DNA of 63,610 bases, counting the filler, from Reticulomyxa filosa (taxonomy: Eukaryota > Protista > Foraminifera): assembly GCA_000512085.1 (NCBI GenBank). It is 22 parts of 22 records of this genome, joined end to end, with 100 filler letters (N's around TTAATTAATTAA, not from the genome) between each part and the next. Parts side by side here need not be neighbours in the genome. Positions count along the whole stretch, not along the records: positions 44,133 to 51,314 come from ASPP01010504.1; 21 more parts are not named here. One strand, given 5' to 3'. The notes beneath the pieces were generated by a model, which did no database searches, had not been told where the DNA came from, and was given only the letters and a program-made list of their open reading frames with translations. This document shows, piece by piece, positions 1,857 to 53,621 of this stretch. A program made the position numbers and the translations under genes. Within the stretch, counting starts at the first letter, position 1. Every line of letters begins with the position of its first letter.

Positions 1857-4329
1857 TCATGTTCTTCTTTTCTTTTTTTTTTTTTTCTTCAATGATGATG
1901 GTCAAAGTATTTATGACTATAATAAACAACAAAAAAAAAAAAAAACATCGACAAACACGTAATTTTCCTCTATCTTCTTCTATTTTTAGTGCGCTTAGTC
2001 AGTGGGTTTTTTCCATTTCCAAAGTGAAGGTTACAAATGATTTTTTATTTTATTTTTTTTTTAGTTGTTTGGTTTGTTTTAAATCATACACTTATTGTCC
2101 GTTCAAAGTTTCACTTGTAGTATAAAATTCGTGGAAATTGTTTGGGGTTTTGTTTGGTTTGTGTTTGAGGTGGACTCCATATCTCCGGTGCCTTTCTATA
2201 TTTTTCACTTTTTTCACTATAAAAACTTGTCGATGGAAAATTTCTTTGTATCGAATATTCCAACATTCTAACCTTCACTAACACATTGGCTCAAAATATT
2301 TTTAAGATTGGAAAATACTGCAAGAAATTTCTGTAATTTTCGCGACTTTTCTAAAAAAAAAATTTGTTGACTATGTATATTTCAAGACCGAGACAATTGC
2401 TCTTATAAATTATATAATTTATGCAAGAGTACTCACACAATGCTTAGAGTAAGCATAACTACATATCACAATTAAAATTTTGAGTTTATAAAGTTTTGGT
2501 TATCAAAAAATTCAGTTTATTGAAATTTACTTAATGGAATTATTCGTATTACACCAAGCTTTTTTCAGTTGGCAGATACTTGCAACAAGTGAAATTTAGT
2601 CCAAAACTTGTGAATTCCTTTTTTCACAATCACACAGCTTGGTTATAGTGTAAGTCACGTACTAATTGTAAAACGAAGACAACTTTTTATAAAGATTATC
2701 GACATGTTCCGTACGCAGACTTTTCCTGGTTAATTTAATGCATAATTACTCCATTTGAAATGCAAGTGAAATAAAAATTTTTTTTTTATTATGGGTCATT
2801 TCTTATTTTTTTTGAACCTGTTTTTAAAAATGACCCAGTTTTATTCAAACAAATTAAATAATGTTTTTTTCAATCAAATATTCACTAATTAAGTCAGTTA
2901 TTGTGTAATTCATCTGTTTTTGTCAAATCAAAAATATATCCAAAAATCAATTATATCAACGAGTTACAAGGGGGAACGTAGTCCCTTTTTTCAAATTTTT
3001 TCTATGTCATGGTTGGATGCGAAGTTATTCTTGTAATGAAGTCATTTTTCCCTATTTTTGAAAATGGAAGTAATTATGAAGAATTCCGCGTTTTTTTGTT
3101 GGTTAAAAGTTATTTTTACGTTTTACACAAGACAAGTTCTGTTATTATTTGCCACGCGACTACTCATTTGTAAAAGGAATATTTTAGATTGTCTATTTTT
3201 TTGTTCAGCAAAATAATTCGTTTTGTGGCGATGTAGTAGTGAGATTAAAGTTATTTCACTCTTTGTATAACGTATAATTATATAAATCATTACAAACACT
3301 TGATTGACATAATTTAGCTGTAACTTTTTTAAGAAAGAACAACTCCGACAAAGATTTTTGTACACCAAACGGATTAGAGTTATATGAGAAAAAAATTTGT
3401 GTACACACTTATGACTCTTTAATGTGGCCTTATTGATCGCTCAAAGAGTTTAATACATAAGCTATATCTTTGAAAGTTAAAATTGACTTCTAAACGAACA
3501 TCACATATCACGTAGGTTTTAATTTGTCGCTCAGTGACAATTTGAAAAAAAAAGTAATCACGTAATGTTGACGTCTACCCAATATCTTTGATAGAGTTAC
3601 ATAAAAGCTAGATTATTGCCTCGAAACACATATATGCACATTGCTCAAACTGCTCAAACCTCTTTTTCGTTTACTCATTTGTAAGTTTGCAATAGCATTA
3701 TTGAAATTTGTTTTTTTTTTCAGACATTGCAAAATTGATTTCTTTGATTAGACAATAAGCAAATTGTCATTTGTATATTCACTTCTTTATTCGTAAAGCA
3801 AATATTTAAGACTTCAACAATATTATCAGTTCTGTCCTGACAAAAAAAAGAAAAAAACAATTCTGCGAAAGAAGTTACACCAAGAGAAAACAAAGATAGT
3901 AAGTTAGATTCATTAACTGAGCGATAATTCAACTTGTACTTGTTAGCAAACAAGGCATTACAGAGAAAAAAAAGAAAAAAATGGAACTAACCCCTTGTCT
4001 TAGAAATGAAAATGTACTTATCTGTTTTGCATGAAAAAATCAAAACCCATGCTGTGTTAATATTCTACTGAGTGAATTTGTAGAAAATCAATAGTTGCCT
4101 TACCTTTTATCTGATTAAACGATTTTTTGGATATCATGTAAAAATGCAATAATTTATTTGAAATTCCAATTTTTCAGAATCGAATTAGAATGTACAAACT
4201 GAATCAGCCAATGGACAGTTATATGTTATCACATTTTTCAACTGAATTTGGAATGGGAACAAATAATTTTCTCTTTTAGAGTTTGTTCCAGCTTTTTTTT
4301 TATCTTCTTCTTTTCTCTATCTTGTTTTC

Positions 4330-44132: not shown

Positions 44133-44265
44133 GCTATCTCTGCCAAGGGCGAGCACTCCATCCAAAGCTTGATTGAAAAGGATGCTCGGATTTGTGGTGG
44201 CTAAACCAAAGTATTGATGTGGCAATGCTATGTCACTGCCCAAGTATACTATGTCATAGCCCCTT

Positions 44266-44296
<31 letters not shown>

Positions 44297-44710
44297 TGTG
44301 TAGTGTTCTTTGGTATACATTCAATATCAACAAATGACATGAAATCGAACTGAATTGAATTTGAAGAAAACGGGAAGGGGAAGGGGGGGGGGGGGGGAGG
44401 AGGGGAAGGGGGAAAGGGAAAAAAAAATGTCTTTTTTGTTAATTTGTACCATTGACCAATTCGCCATAATAACTCCATGAAAAGGACCCCAATGACGCAT
44501 TTTTATAAGTAGAAGACGATGTATATGCATATGTCTCTTGTCCGCTGCTCAGCTTTGATGAGTCTATTGCTGGACTTAACCAAAATGACTCTGCGTTTAC
44601 ACTGTCCAATAACACTGTCAGTGCTTGCATCGCTGATCCTACTTTTATATCCAACGTCGCGTAGTCGTTATTTGTTTTTGTGTTTACGCTGCTTACACTG
44701 CTTCCTAGCC
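44133..44710 (-). CDS. Pepsin-like (A1) aspartic protease homolog, N-terminal lobe, partial
   Basis: IKVGS..QALTVLLDS, SSSTY, F...Y, G.DIV.LG, Q.FGLAT and LDGVLALG. Intron 44273-44449. Confidence 0.7.
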
Positions 44711-45387
44711 CACATCTTTTATTTTTTTAAAAAAAAAAGATTTTTTGTTTCAAGTCTATCGTTTTGCTCTCTTAGACGTTCTGACACAATTGTTCGTCAT
44801 TGTCTTCATCTTTGTATCATACAAATAGACCAAACAAAACTTCAAATGATAGATCAAAATTAATAACGTTGAAAATTGGCCCAACATTTAAGACTTAATT
44901 TGAAGCCTAATATTTTTAATATTTTAAATAGTTTTTTTTCCCGTCCCTCCATTTCTCAACTTTTGGACAAAGACTTTTTCAAAGACCAAACCATTTTTTT
45001 TTTACTACTGTTTGTCTTATATTTTCACTTACAACAAAAACGAACTAGCAAATAGTTAAGTAATGTTAGATTAAAAACGGCTGTCTTATTGGTATGGCAA
45101 TTATCTTGTAGTTTATATTGTTAAAAAAAGGCTCGGTGGTGATTTCTTGCGAACAAATGCAACAGATGATGAAATATTTGTATTCCTCTTTTTTTTTCAA
45201 TGAATATTAGGAGATGGACCCAATAAAAGTTTAAATAAGATGGGGGGGGGAAAAAAAAGAAACAAAAAACAAAACAAAAAAATGTAATATTCTTTCAACA
45301 ATTTGTTTAGAATAGATTTCAGTGATTATGTCTCCTTGACTGAACATTGAAACGCAAAGCACCTAATATCAAGTGAGTAATTGTCAT

Positions 45388-46345
45388 TTAAGGCGTATTG
45401 AGACTCTCTTCAGTCGATACCGTGTTTACCGTATTCCAAAGATTTCCAGCACTAGCATCTCTTTCCCATTGAGTAATCCATACAAGCCAAACGCATAACG
45501 TGAACATCAACAAAATGATTATATACACATATGTATATATATATAAGAGTTCGAATACCTTTCGTCGTCCTGTTGTGTGTATTGACTTCTTGATTGGGAA
45601 GACGAATCTCTATGATCACTCTCTTGTTTATGTTCGGTTTGATTTTTGTCTAGACTGGACATTTCATAGAAAAGATCCAATGTCTTGCACATTGTATAGC
45701 GAATCGAAGCGAGTTCACATGCTCCAATGTTTTTGAGCTAAAATTGTCGACAAAAAAAAAAAAAAAAAATTATATAAAGATAACATTTTTGTTTTGGTAA
45801 CAAACGTTTTAACTCCGATCACATATGAACTTGGCTGAATTTGTTTTAAGTTTGCATTCATTTTGTTTTTTCGAATTTCTTCAATGTCTTTGATCAATAC
45901 GCGGATACTCGTTGCATCGGCGATATCGTCTTCGCATTCACATAACAACACCTTTGCGATTTCACGGTAATAAAACGGCAACTGTTGAAACGGCCCTTGG
46001 TGCTTCTCCTTTTCAATACACTGTTTCAATTGCTCTGTCTTTAACCAACGCGGTGCCTTGATCCGACATTTTTTTGCTTTCTTTAATGCCACTGCCAACC
46101 ACAAGGGTACTTCTATCTCTGTTCCTGCCGCAAATGGACCATATGTTCCCTTTGTTCCATTTTTGTTTACTTAAATTGCTCACTCATCAAAAAAAATAAT
46201 TCGCCGAGAACAGAAAGTAATCACACTTAACGTGGATTAACTCGAATTTTGATAAAGAAAAGGATGGTACAATGGATATGAGTTCACTCTCTGCTAAGAA
46301 TTCGTTTTCATCTTGTGGTCCAAAAAGCTTCTTTCGTTCCATCAT
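45388..46345 (-). CDS. GINS2: GINS complex subunit PSF2
   Basis: EFLAESELISIVP, GTYGPF...EVPLWLAVALKK..KCRIKAPRWL, LPFYYREI and IRVLIKDIEEIR. The 3' end is approximate. Confidence 0.93.
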
Positions 46346-46751
46346 CTGGCAAGAGTGGGGTGTTTTTTTAAATTTTATTTTACACAAAGTTTATATTGAA
46401 AAAAGACGTTAGTCAAAATTGTAAGCCTGCAGTCCAAATACGCAGCACTTTTTGTTTTTATAGCTGCGATTTGAATTTACGTTGTCCTTTTTATTAAAAT
46501 TTTTTTAAAAAGTCTTTTTATTGTCAATATTTGTTATTTTCGAGATTGTTGGCAAACTGTTTCCTTTATTTGGCATTTGCATTCAGTTTCAGGCCAACTT
46601 TAGTGGACAACGACATACTTCTTGTCGAGAGATAGCTTGTGATAGTGCAACGATAAATGCAGAATTAGAAGAAAAAAAGCAATATTGGAAGAATGTCGAA
46701 AGACTAGGAAGAGAAAACAACAGTGCAAGAAGTAGGGCCGAGTTAACAAGA

Positions 46752-48796
46752 TTAACGTTGTTTCTGAAAGGCTTTCATTTCAAGATCAGGAATGGAAACA
46801 TCAAAGAGATCAATATCGCAAGGATTTTCCAGACCTAGTCCTTTTTTTGCGAAGGCTAAGAAATAAAAGGATCCAACACAGACAATGATTTCTTCTTTTT
46901 GTGATAAGTTACCTTCACGTTGTCTACCAAAGTTTGCTTTGGCAGCCATGTCGAACGCGACCCTAGCCTCAAGATCGGGTACCCCTTGACAACTATCATG
47001 GATGACCGGAGGTGGTCGTTGCACGCAGTGTATCTGCTGCGACTGCAAAAGGTGATTTTTCAACTCGGGTATTTTGATGGACCGATAATTGGGAGCACTG
47101 ACCAGATGGATATGATCGGCAAACGTGTTTAGCACTTTCAAGCACCGTTCAATCTCTTGACTGCTTCCGCCTTTTTCGGTGTTGTGTATATGTATTGCAA
47201 GTGTTTGATTGTGAAATCGATTCCAATTCTAGCGAATTGGTATGGACACATTCAAATGCAAATATAAATACAAATGCAAACAGAAAGGTATGAACAAATG
47301 AGACAAAACGAGACAATCCGGTGATAATACGATAGGAATATTGAGTTTTCGGATATTTGAGTTGCAGCGTTTCAAAGAAATTATTGATTGCAACATCATC
47401 ATGTCCGACATCGAGAACACAATGCAAGTTGTTTTGATATCTTTATTTTTTATTTTTTATTTTTTTATTTTATTTATTTTAATAATATAATAATAATGAT
47501 AATGCTATATAATGAATGATAACGAACAACAAATATTTGTTTGTTTGGAGTAACTCGGGATGAACAAGGGTATGCTCTTCAAAACGACATGGAGGTCGAA
47601 TAGACAACAACTGGTCGATTTGTGGCATGATCTTATCCAATCGAGCTTCTAGTCCTTTCAATTCATTGGCTAATACTTTCAAACACAACTTCGCAGTATT
47701 CTGGTTTTCTTCGTCGTATGGCACAAATCCTTTTTTATTCAATTCCACCGAAAATACTTCACTTTGGGTTTTTTTCGCTTCCTTTTGTTGTTCCCATTAG
47801 TAATGTACATCATATGATATATACGCATATATGCATATACATATATACATATATATATATACATATATATATATGTATATATGTATATGCATAGGTTTAT
47901 ATTTGATTGTGTTTCCACAAAACTCGATAAATAATCTCTTTTGGGACAGTGGGACCAATGACAACTGGCCGCTTTGGTTTGATAATCCCCGCTTTTTCAA
48001 AAGCTATCTCTTCAATTGTATCTCCCAAAATATCTGTGTGATGCAATGATATCGACGTTATTACTGATAGCAATGGATCTTCAATTATGTTTGTCGCGTC
48101 AAATCGTCCTCTTTTTTTTTTTTTAAAAAAATAAAAAACGCTGCACGTTAAATAGATGCATGTACATTATATAAACATATATATGTATACATATATGTTT
48201 ATATAATGTGCACATGCAAGAATTACTCAGTCTTACCCCAATCCAACTTCGATTACTCCAATATCTACTTTCTCTCTTTTGAAATGCTCAAATCCCAAGA
48301 CTGTAATAAATTCAAAAAAAGATACGTTTTGGACATTGAACTTCTTTTCCATGTCCAATAATGTTTCAACACAGTCAATCATCGCCTCTTGACTTATCAT
48401 TTCTTTTTTATGGGTTTTACTGTCCATTGTTACCAAACGCTCTCGCAGTGAACATATGTGTGGAGATGTCATCAACCCTACTTTGTATCCACAATGGCTT
48501 AATACATTCCCGAGCTTCCAACATACTGAGCCTTTCCCATTGGTTCCTGTCACATGGATACATGGATACGCTCGCCAAGGATAACCCAGCACTTCTCCCA
48601 AACGAAAGGGAGTCTTTAAGGACAACTCGGACTTATATTCTTTACTTACGAGAGCTTGACGACGATGTATAAATTTGTTCACGCAGTCTTTATATTTCTG
48701 AAGAGTAGTAAACGACATTATCCACCATGAGAATTTTCTGAGGAAATTACTGTCCCAAAACGAAACGTTCAAACATATTTCTTTTGAAAATAACAT
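46752..48796 (-). CDS. Folylpolyglutamate synthase / dihydrofolate synthase
   Basis: [25 protein letters not shown]|[27 protein letters not shown] and GSFY. Confidence 0.93.
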
Positions 48797-49217
48797 TTAT
48801 CTTTATTAACTTGCGTTGAATGTCTATTTGAAAATTTCAAAAGCATATCACTTAAAATATTTTGTTTTACTCCGTTATTGAAATATTTTACTTTTATTAT
48901 TAAGCCAAGGTATATGGACCCTGAGAAATGTTGGCATATCCCATTCCAAGTTGTCCATATTCAACTTTGAACAATCTTTACTTCGATTCCAAAATAAAAA
49001 GCAATATGATGAAAGTAAATTTTTTTTTGCTTTTGTATTTTCTTGTTTGTTCAATCATATTTGGAAAATTTTGTTCAGCAGCATCTGATCTTTTTTTATG
49101 TTTAATTTTTGATTTGATCAGCAACACAGAAAAATGCTTTTTTTTTTTTTTCAATGTTTGTAAAACGATGAATACTCCTTTCATTTTTAAGTAAAAAGTA
49201 ATGGTGATCTTATTCGT

Positions 49218-51192
49218 ATGAAAACGGGGTAAGTGGTACTTTTGGTTTTCCTCTTTTTTAAAAAAAAAAAAAACGCAGCTTGTAGGGAAAAAAAAATAAT
49301 GGCAGCAAAGAAGACCAAGCAAAATCCACCCACAGATGATGAAACCGAACATGGAGACATGGTGGACAAATTATTAGATTATACTCTTCCGAACAAGTAT
49401 ATCTTTAAAAGACTAAAAAAGGCAGACGACGAAAAAAAGGAGGAGAAAGAGAGGGACGCAAGATGCGAGAGCAAGGTGGATACATCTATGGAATTTAAGG
49501 ATGTGGACAAGATATGTACGCAAGCGAACATATTAATACAAGAACTGTTGAACAAGTGTCGAGACGAAGAGCAAGATAAAGCATGTGATTTTTCGCACGT
49601 GTATGGAGTGGTATTGGGAGGAAGTTTGCAGAAGCGTTTAGCGATAGGAAAGAAGTACGACGGAGATTTGGTATTGTTATGTCAAATGGGTAAGATGAAG
49701 GTATCAGAGGCACGAGAGCGTAAGCAAAAGATATTGGAGTGGATAACAAATACGGTGACACGTTTGCAGCGAAGTAAGGATAGTAGGGTGTTGCAAGTGC
49801 CAAAGAAGTGTTTATCAGTGAAATTTGAAAACTATGAGTTCGACCTGTTGGTGGCATTTACGTATGAAAAAAGATTGTATTGTACATTTGATTACAAAAG
49901 TCTGGGGACGCACGTATACTTATTTTCAAAGGAAGAGCTGGAGATGACTGCGGAAGATTTGATGGAACATTACTCATCATACCAAGACGCGATCGACAGT
50001 GCCAATGCAGACGAAGTGGAGTTTTTGAAGGAAAATATGAGTGCGGCATTGACTTTATTAGGGACGTATTACTTGAGAGAAGAGTTGATTGGTAAAAACG
50101 CATTGCGAGCTATTTTGCTGCTGAAAACGTGGAAGTACGACTTGCAGCAAGAATACCCGAACTTGAAAACTCTTTGCATCAAAAGCACCACCATCGAAAT
50201 GTTATGCGTTTATGCGAGGGAATTTTTGCGCAAGCGGTTGAAGAAAAAAAAAACAGATGTGAGCATGCTTTCCATCATCCAACAGGTTATGCGCATTATC
50301 AACTGTCTCAGCGATTGTGCCAACAAAACTAGCGGCTGCATGTTGCGCTGGCCTTATGAAGAAAAGCCTAACAACACTTTGATTCGAGAGGAGGATATTC
50401 GAAAGTGGGCACTCAAACAAAGCTCTTCCATTTTGAATTCCGTGCTTATCATGGATAATATCATCTTACGTTTGGTCCAACTGCAGCTTTCTCTGTGACA
50501 AAAAATGATGACTATATATATATATATATATATACATTATTTTTTTAATTTAAAATAGAGTCTTTTTTTTTTTGTCCTCTTTTTATTTTCACTCCACTCC
50601 AAAAAAAATAACTGGTTTACTGTATATACAATGCACACAAATAAATTACTACGTATGATATATACATATGTAATATACGTGTACATATCACTTAATGGCT
50701 CTTGTTTTTTGTGCTAATGGTTTTAACACAGAAAAGGTTGAGAGAGATGCAACTCCAACGGTGTGGAGTGACCTTAGCAAACAAGCTTTGAAGGCCAAAG
50801 AAGAACTGGCCACAAATCCTGAGGCGTGGATCGACGACTTGCTTCGAAACAAGGAGCCCCCAAAAGAGCAAGCGAAAGATAAGATAACAATGCTTGACTT
50901 AGACAAGCATACTCTCACAATGAGAAAATTTTGCCTTGAACAGTGCTTCTATAAACTAAGCGTGGAAAAAAAACCCTTGAAAATTGCCTCGCACGAGCTC
51001 TTTGATAAATGGAAAGTGTTGTATCACAATTCATGTCCTTCGAATCTGACGATTATGGAGCGTGACATGAGACAACTCGTTAGCAAAGATCAATTAAAAA
51101 TTGGGTATGCCGGAAATGTTCCCACATACACTTGGATTGGTGAGCCACAAGACAAATCTCAAGACATTAATAAACTTCTTGGGCTTTCCTGA
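49218..51192 (+). CDS. 2'-5' oligoadenylate synthetase (OAS)-like nucleotidyltransferase with C-terminal winged-helix domain
   Basis: LGGSLQK...DGDLV, EFDLLVAF, AILLLKTW, IEMLCVYA, VLIMD and WSDLSKQA are collinear with OAS1. Frame-consistent introns 49229-49285 and 50470-50731. Confidence 0.85.
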
Positions 51193-53621
51193 AAGGAATA
51201 TCAGAGGATATCGGGATTAATTTTTTCCTTCACAACTCGCAAAATACAATTTACTTCAGACTAAAAAGATGTCTTCTCTCTTCAAAAAGTGAACAGCAAT
51301 TGTCTTTTTTTTTTNNNNNNNNNNNNNNNNNNNNNNNNNNNNNNNNNNNNNNNNNNNNTTAATTAATTAANNNNNNNNNNNNNNNNNNNNNNNNNNNNNN
51401 NNNNNNNNNNNNNNAATTGACTTCAAGTCCAGTTTCGCATTGTCTTTGCTTTTTTTTTTCTCCATCTTACTCAGTTTCTTCCTTTTGGCTTTTGGTTTCT
51501 TAATTAGATGATGTATATAAATTGATTCTAGAGTTTTCCTTTTTGAAGTTTTTTTGAACTGGGGAAGTTTTGTTGTGGCCAACTCTATTTTTTTGGTACA
51601 AAAATTACATCATTTGAAAAGAATTCATTTCAAAAGTTGTTTTCATTTTTAAAAATTAAAAAAGATCGTATATTCTAAATGCTAAAATCATGTGAGAAAA
51701 CATTTATTGTTGAAGATGAAAGTAAAAACAGATTTCATTTGAAAATTTCACGCAAAAAACGAATACAAAATATTTACCTTTATTTAAGTGGGTTTTTTTC
51801 TTACTTGGTTGTTCCCTACAAAAAGGGGAAACTTTAGAACTTTTCAATTCAAACAATTTAAAAGTTCAATTGCAGAAAAGGATTAAAAGTAAAAAACTTG
51901 ACGCAAGTACAACCTTTGAATAGTATTCTCTTTTAAGAATGAAACGAGATTGCGCCATCATTTAAGAACTGAGAAAAGAGAAAAAAAGAAGTGAGTTATT
52001 TTTCTAGAAAAGAGTATTCAAGATTATCTCAAGTTAGTTTAAATAATATAGCAAAATCAAAAGTAATATAAAGTATTCAGATAAAAAGCAAAGTTTTATC
52101 AAATAGCAATCATTGTACAAGTAATATTTTATTTGTAATTTTGTTGAAAATAACAGAAAAAGAAATAAATGTATTGAATTGTTTGCTTTTGAATGTTCTA
52201 TTTGGAGAGATGCACTTGTTTAAATGATAAATATTTTCAACAATTATTTCATACCAATGAAATTCAATGATATTTTCTTTTTTCCTTTTTTATTTAGATC
52301 AATTGATAGTCATTGAACACTGTTATAAATAATGAAAAAACAATTAAAATAAAAAGTAATGATATTCAAGAGAGTATCGATCTATAACTATCCAAAATGA
52401 CAAAACATAATTGGAGAAAAAAACACATTGAATAAATTAATGAATATAAATGTTGTTTAATTTAATGACAGAACATTGTTTGAGAAAAGTAATCTCACAT
52501 ATACAACATTTTATGTGACTTTTTATATTTTATTGAAGAGCCTTTTTTTGTTGTTATGTCCAAATTCAAAATACAAACAAAAAATCACTGAGTTAAACTC
52601 TTTTTTGCAAATATATACAGAAATATTTCTCTCATTATTTTCAATTCATTGTTTTCTTCTGTTCTATTCAATATACAATCACAAACATTCTGAAAACATT
52701 ATTTTTTTTTGTGCTACCATAAGACCTTAACTTACTGATGTCGTAAGTAGAAGAAGTGTCTAAATAAATTTGATTAAATTGTTTCCATTTTTCAAAATGA
52801 TTGTTTTATCCATCTTATTGCTAAATACTTGTAATAATTGTATTACACTGCAGTTGTTGTTGGTAAGTTGTGATATAATTGATGTATTAGTTTGAAAAAA
52901 GGATATTTGAACAATTTTTTTGATTTGCTTGCGTTAGTTGAACTCTTTGTAAAGAATTATCTATTTGCATATTTATGACAATGAAATGAACAATGATGAC
53001 TTGCAATATTGTTAAGAAAAAACAAAGTAAATGTCAATTTTACGTTAACAATTTGTTTAAGTTTATTTTTTTGATCAAAAGAAGGAAAAAAAAGCAAAAA
53101 ATAAAACATTTGCCAAGCGAACCCTTGCTTAGCTGGTAATTTTTTTTATTTCTCTTTTTTTTTTTACCTTCGTTTTTTAATTTAATGTTTTAACTTTAGT
53201 TTTGTATTTGGTGTATTTGTCGTTTAGTAGTAATTCAGCAAATATCATTGAAGAATGAAATGAGTTTATTAATATTTTATTTATTAATTTGTTTTTTGTT
53301 ATTTTTTTGAGATTTATTTTATGTTTTGTTTGTAATTTGTTATTAGTGCTGTTGATAAAAGTTTTTTTTGTTGCTAGTGTCTTGAAAGTATTTCAAAAAT
53401 TTATGTTGGGTTTAAGTGCAATGGCTTTTGCAATTAGTGGAATATATTCTATAATTTTACATGCACAATTTGCAACACTGTATTAAATTGTCGTTGTAGT
53501 TATTGATAATATACTTTTACCNNNNNNNNNNNNNNNNNNNNNNNNNNNNNNNNNNNNNNNNNNNNTTAATTAATTAANNNNNNNNNNNNNNNNNNNNNNN
53601 NNNNNNNNNNNNNNNNNNNNN

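Follow-up and report, generated by a model that had tools for sequence, protein, structure and literature searches.

A gene for an OAS-like enzyme was found in the window, the whole stretch of 63,610 nucleotides (filler included) analysed here, which joins 22 parts of the genome of the foraminiferan Reticulomyxa filosa (assembly GCA_000512085.1). The gene lies on the + strand in the part taken from ASPP01010504.1 (positions 44,133 to 51,314). It has two exons and runs from an ATG at 49299 to a TGA stop codon at 51190-51192, with a predicted spliced product of about 543 residues. The coding part of exon 1 (49299-50469) comprises 390 codons plus the first base of codon 391 and holds an N-terminal extension of about 48 residues together with most of the OAS-like core. 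The start of exon 2 (50732-50847) encodes the last part of the OAS C-lobe; after it, at 50890-51189, comes a C-terminal domain of about 100 residues that is specific to the family and conserved across paralogs. ATG 49299 has an A-rich stretch just upstream, is used in the public gene model and is backed by paralog alignment, and the frame stays open from it to 50469, where it ends ..ATC TTA C/GTTTGG. The original prediction began the gene at 49218; the ATG there meets TAA at 49230 unless a 57-base GTAAGT..TAG intron (49229-49285) is removed, and ATG 49299 is preferred. By frame arithmetic a possible 5' mini-exon at 49218-49228 (ATG AAA ACG GG), joined across that intron, would add eight in-frame residues, which we regard as speculative.

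The exons are separated by a predicted spliceosomal intron of 262 bases (50470-50731, phase 1) containing a (TA)n run, with GT at 50470-50471 and AG at 50730-50731. Its removal would join C 50469 to AA 50732-50733 as CAA (Gln, codon 391) and lead into the second open frame, 50695-51192 on the + strand. The original prediction had linked the two open reading frames in this way, and its coordinates, boundaries and frame were borne out by the sequence. Five lines agree on a real intron, as far as genomic sequence can tell. First, GC content is 26% in the intron and 41-42% in the exons. Second, loci L001 and L002 of this genome, both of which hold paralogs, are interrupted by GT..AG at the identical codon position and phase, with junctions ..TTG C/GTTTCG, then ACAG/AA or ATAG/GA. 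Third, an environmental homolog (P0014 on contig L005, 48% identical over the shared part) reads uninterrupted across the predicted junction as VLIMDNIIL-Q-NVERD. Fourth, alignments to genuine OAS proteins run on past the splice site, with the (I/V)L(I/M)D strand corresponding to PVILDP and the W-DL-..A helix after it to the W..LA.EA helix (in the family profile, ilDn...W.dla against PVILDP...W..L..EA of OAS2). Fifth, public gene calls split the gene into a 399-residue protein (P0001, 49299-50498, running nine residues into the intron) and a 165-residue protein (P0028, 50695-51192), the outcome expected from an unrecognised intron. The public 399-residue model is therefore cut short, lacking both the last part of the catalytic core and the conserved extra domain.

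Some further observations were made on these homologous loci. P0014 (L005 153-1064, JGI sample 3300030627) shows no interruption at either of the intron positions found in R. filosa paralogs, as would be the case for a relative without introns or a contig derived from cDNA. The L001 and L002 loci carry a second intron that the window gene does not have. Their conserved reading also needs frame changes near poly-A runs (L001 at about 3150-3230 and 2415-2568, L002 at about 700-850), owing either to homopolymer sequencing errors left in the assembly or to decay of the copies.

The order of the OAS motifs is kept in the translation. GGSLQKR begins at residue 107, YDGDLV at 120, YEFDLLVAF at 179, NMSAALT at 246, LLLKTWK at 273, IEMLCVYA at 299 and CMLRWP at 347; VLIMDNIIL closes exon 1, and exon 2 contains WSDLSKQA. 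Each motif quoted in the original prediction of an intact gene is present in the + strand translation of 49299-50468 or 50734-51189. G107-G108-S109 (49617-49625) forms the G-S motif of a Pol-beta-type nucleotidyltransferase active site and aligns to GGS both in human OAS2 and in a lizard OAS2-like domain. D121-G122-D123 (49659-49667) aligns to OAS DAD and provides the first two catalytic Asp as a DxD that few paralogs keep, and D182 (49842-49844), within YEFDLLVAF, aligns to OAS FDVLPA as the third; a paralog table was also used in placing the G-S motif and D182. The G-S motif and three catalytic Asp by which the OAS superfamily is recognised are all present, as are a Pol-beta-type N-lobe and a helical OAS1_C-type C-lobe. 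K276 in LLLKTWK (50124-50126) is the counterpart, in hhalign and hmmsearch alignments, of the Lys in the OAS LVK(H/Y)W helix, and would have the role in ATP binding that this Lys has in OAS1.

Similarity of the window protein to OAS is far beyond chance in these sequence comparisons. A single-sequence PDB search gave a weak OAS2 match (E 0.0034), which profiles later strengthened: with a 25-sequence family profile, human OAS2 was the sole significant match among all PDB sequences (E 1.6e-10). Using hhalign, the family alignment matched the lizard OAS2-like domain with 91% probability (E 1.1e-6) over 281 columns, every motif being in register. When 1.84 billion representatives were searched exhaustively with a profile, only 26 proteins came up, 20 of which were looked up: 16 R. 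filosa paralogs, three environmental proteins (P0014, P0020, P0025) and one reptile OAS2-like protein, the sole match from a named family among those 20 (E 1.1e-4). The closest proteins are R. filosa hypothetical proteins from the same assembly. A Pfam scan of both exon products gave no SMODS match, and CBASS_cyclase_a, a model for cyclases of the cyclic oligonucleotide-based antiphage signalling system (CBASS), scored a weak 25.4 bits in the N-lobe against a cutoff of 200. Weak N-lobe matches to CBASS cyclase models are in keeping with the published nesting of OAS within clade C of the bacterial cGAS/DncV-like nucleotidyltransferases (CD-NTases).

Structure comparison points the same way. AlphaFold modelled the exon-1 product with confidence, giving a predicted local distance difference test score (pLDDT) of 89.3 and a predicted template modelling score (pTM) of 0.87; exon 2 was modelled separately, so the last core helix lies outside the core model. 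The structure comparison value was highest for OAS1 (21.4-20.6 over 277-281 residues, 20% identity), followed by OASL (19.4), OAS3 domain I (18.9), yeast poly(A) polymerase (18.0), OAS2 (17.9), CdnC (17.1) and CdnD (16.8), with NF45/NF90, cGAS and TUT7 each at about 15. OAS1 residue 4 aligns with model residue 49, so the structured N-terminal extension is of about 48 residues. In a shape search of the ESM Atlas the four best clusters were all chordate OAS (template modelling (TM) score 0.60-0.62). Foldseek gave a near tie in E-value between the DZF domain of NF90 (7.7e-7) and OAS1 (1.5e-6), whereas TM-scores favour human OAS1. The NF45/NF90 DZF domain (4AT7-4ATB) shares the fold of the R. filosa protein, and a DZF-type protein, recognised by loss of the catalytic residues, was rejected as the best match, these residues being kept here. 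The original prediction had counted a best structural match to a terminal uridylyltransferase (TUTase), a poly(A) polymerase or an NF45/DZF protein against itself; it came through this comparison, since sequence profiles, TM-scores and the ESM Atlas all point to OAS and the active site is complete.

About 38 residues at the beginning of exon 2 complete the OAS C-lobe; they are followed by a short charged linker and then by the C-terminal domain. Helices 8-27 and 29-38 of the exon-2 model are of low confidence. The domain carries an (I/V)EHCF-type motif (LEQCF in the window copy), is predicted to fold as helix-helix-helix-hairpin-helix, faintly like a winged helix, and is conserved in paralogs, catalytically dead ones included. 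It gave no Pfam, PDB-sequence or fold match, apart from two chance-level Pfam matches for paralog pieces; its profile against PDB sequences returned a marginal mL45 match alone (E 0.05). A protein-atlas feature search returned unnamed, DUF3874 and Pox_D5-like clusters, all below the level of feature sharing that marks true relatives. When an exon-2 alignment was searched against 5.8 billion clusters, no homologs of similar length were found besides the window's own 165-residue open reading frame.

The family has undergone a large, lineage-specific expansion in R. filosa, with at least 16 paralogs among the 20 of 26 matches looked up. In most paralogs GGS has become SGC, DxD has become CGY, NSA or ESS, and the third Asp is His or Asn, and these pseudoenzyme-like copies (among P0002-P0019 and P0022) retain the fold and often the C-terminal domain. 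The full catalytic set is kept by the window protein and P0002, and in part by P0010 (ExD) and by P0019 and P0020 (NGD). A complete active site is rare among the paralogs, and the window gene is hence one of few candidates for an active enzyme. The set of dead paralogs resembles the pseudoenzymes OASL, OAS2/3 and mouse Oas1 of mammals.

We consider it probable, at roughly 60%, that the window protein is an active enzyme which joins nucleoside triphosphates (NTPs), most likely ATP, into short signal oligonucleotides without a template, the linkage being 2'-5' or possibly mixed. The protein is built, in order, of the N-terminal extension, an OAS-superfamily core with its GGS, DxD and D residues, the linker and the C-terminal domain. 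Its core would polymerise NTPs into 2'-5'-linked or mixed-linkage oligomers, and these would serve as a signal, as with animal OAS enzymes. The switch might be constitutive, as in sponge OAS, or might be nucleic acid acting through the core, or the C-terminal domain. Nucleic-acid sensing and an antiviral role, as originally predicted, are possible; the trigger could equally be the C-terminal domain, or none may exist. More tentatively, and with rather more doubt than belief, the C-terminal domain would be a new module for binding a ligand, nucleic acid or partner, and Reticulomyxa and its relatives would run a lineage-specific form of OAS-based sensing in which a few active synthases are accompanied by many pseudoenzyme paralogs, as regulators or decoys, and by a reader unrelated to RNase L.

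Several points weigh against an active signal synthase. Identity to OAS1 is 18-20%, a Thr stands where OAS has Tyr beside the conserved E-L-L motif, and neither exon product has a Pfam match to OAS1_C (PF10421) or NTP_transf_2, the result being a chance-level PTPS match; the protein is, on this lack of a Pfam family, divergent. Since most paralogs are catalytically dead, the family might do its main work without catalysis. Even lower Metazoa lack RNase L (PMC6307210), and there is accordingly no known reader of 2'-5'-linked oligoadenylate (2-5A) here. Finally, the enzyme is known from its gene sequence and predicted structure, and its splice junction and expression are predicted from genomic sequence. 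This last point counts also for the first alternative, a protein that is non-catalytic and serves in binding or scaffolding, like DZF, Mab21 or OASL proteins, or a gene that is not expressed. It is favoured also by the best Foldseek E-value, which goes to the NF90 DZF domain, and by the fact that most paralogs lack the GS, DxD and D residues and yet keep the fold and C-terminal domain; we consider it unlikely for this copy.

Quite unlikely, too, is synthesis of cyclic oligonucleotides, for example a cyclic trinucleotide, instead of linear 2-5A. This is what bacterial clade C enzymes of the CdnC type (6P80, 6U7B) make, within CBASS operons that also encode HORMA/Trip13 proteins and effectors, whereas the R. 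filosa gene is solitary, nuclear and intron-bearing. The least probable alternative is an enzyme that tails RNA 3' ends, as poly(A) polymerases and TUTases do, with no signal synthesis, since poly(A) polymerases reach only 9-10% identity and are outranked by five OAS-type entries, no match to PAP_central, a PAP-associated or an RNA-binding domain was found by Pfam in either exon product (canonical and non-canonical poly(A)/poly(U) polymerases were rejected on this ground), and sequence profiles point to OAS alone.

The preferred reading, an OAS-type signal synthase, has a place in the published record. OAS-like proteins were reported in 8 of 12 eukaryotic supergroups by a search of EukProt and probably date to the last eukaryotic common ancestor (Culbertson & Levin 2023, PMC10732462). 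The alignments of that survey include EP00480_Reticulomyxa_filosa_P025644, whose aligned residues and full-length start match the window protein. In its main tree (S2 File) the window protein stands together with four further sequences from R. filosa, beside OAS of dinoflagellates, chlorophytes and animals and adjoining clade C of the bacterial CD-NTases; alternative published trees shift the R. filosa clade somewhat. The species table gives R. filosa OAS = 1, the hmmscan table for the protein has as its sole entry the chance PTPS match, as in the present Pfam scan, and the name R. filosa is absent from the main text (PMC10732462). The protein is thus already catalogued, in truncated form and without discussion or experiment, and, as a member of the survey's OAS superfamily dataset, it belongs to a kind of system that is already known. 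The original prediction is supported in part: it stands in placing an OAS-family protein in a non-animal eukaryote, which profiles, hhalign, fold comparison, the complete active site and the published tree all uphold; the finding is not new in kind, and the protein is already in PMC10732462. The locus does not represent a new kind of system. The survey's non-metazoan OAS entry is the same protein, but in the 399-residue model, which contains neither the final core helix nor the C-terminal domain. The additions made here are modest: the corrected model of about 543 residues, the family-specific C-terminal domain and the lineage-specific, pseudoenzyme-rich expansion. With its active site intact, the copy now described at full length is a sensible one of R. 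filosa to express and assay. Non-animal OAS enzymes are known but biochemically untouched, and to our knowledge no protist member has a demonstrated product, trigger or effector.

Animal enzymes provide the nearest comparisons. OAS occurs in lower Metazoa that have neither RNase L nor interferon, and sponge OAS is active without double-stranded RNA and yields mixed 2'-5' and 3'-5' products (Hu et al. 2018, PMC6307210); activation by double-stranded RNA is therefore not a universal OAS feature. OAS of sponges and other invertebrates shares 23-31% identity with human OAS1 (PMC6307210) and is thus closer to it than the R. filosa protein, at 18-20%. The invertebrate enzymes have demonstrated activity, whereas the R. 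filosa protein is represented by sequence and models, as it is beside vertebrate OAS1 (human 4IG8; porcine 4RWN, 4RWO; 20% identity), and they are a plausible model for its behaviour. Relative to vertebrate OAS1, the R. filosa protein has in addition the 48-residue N-terminal extension and the C-terminal domain of about 100 residues, and it has no Pfam OAS1_C match. On STING, the Catalogs sheet of S1 File in the survey lists R. filosa (EP00480) as 0 in the genomes list and as 1 in the fourth column of a later list (PMC10732462); no R. filosa sequence is among the survey's STING files.

The surroundings are those of an ordinary nuclear foraminiferan locus, and the gene is a genuine eukaryotic one. 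It is solitary, lying between a gene for folylpolyglutamate synthase (FPGS) and the contig end. The FPGS gene is multi-exon, on the - strand at 46752-48796 (phmmer against PDB FPGS, E 6.8e-20; weak Mur_ligase_M matches), and an intron-containing gene for the GINS subunit Psf2 is also on the - strand, at 45715-46387 (Pfam PSF2_N E 1.8e-7, Sld5 E 2.9e-5). A contaminant or bacterial fragment was ruled out by the conserved intron and these two neighbours. A bacterial CBASS CD-NTase was likewise rejected, given the same neighbours, the Pfam scan (no SMODS, CBASS_cyclase_a far below its cutoff) and no effector operon.

Outside the window, two observations on the wider family can be added. P0020 is an intronless homolog of 675 residues (GGS, NGD, and FD at the third-Asp position) encoded on marine metagenome contigs, at 8001-10028 of L003 (a TARA Oceans scaffold of about 22% GC) and 2184-4211 of L004. 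Both contigs show dense gene packing on both strands and no gene with a Pfam match; no relative turned up in IMG/VR when it was scanned with P0020 or alignment A1, and the source may be an AT-rich protist or a giant virus. Within R. filosa, two family paralogs, RFI_05369 (P0017) and RFI_05373 (P0015), share one contig of 9663 bases, which suggests local duplication.
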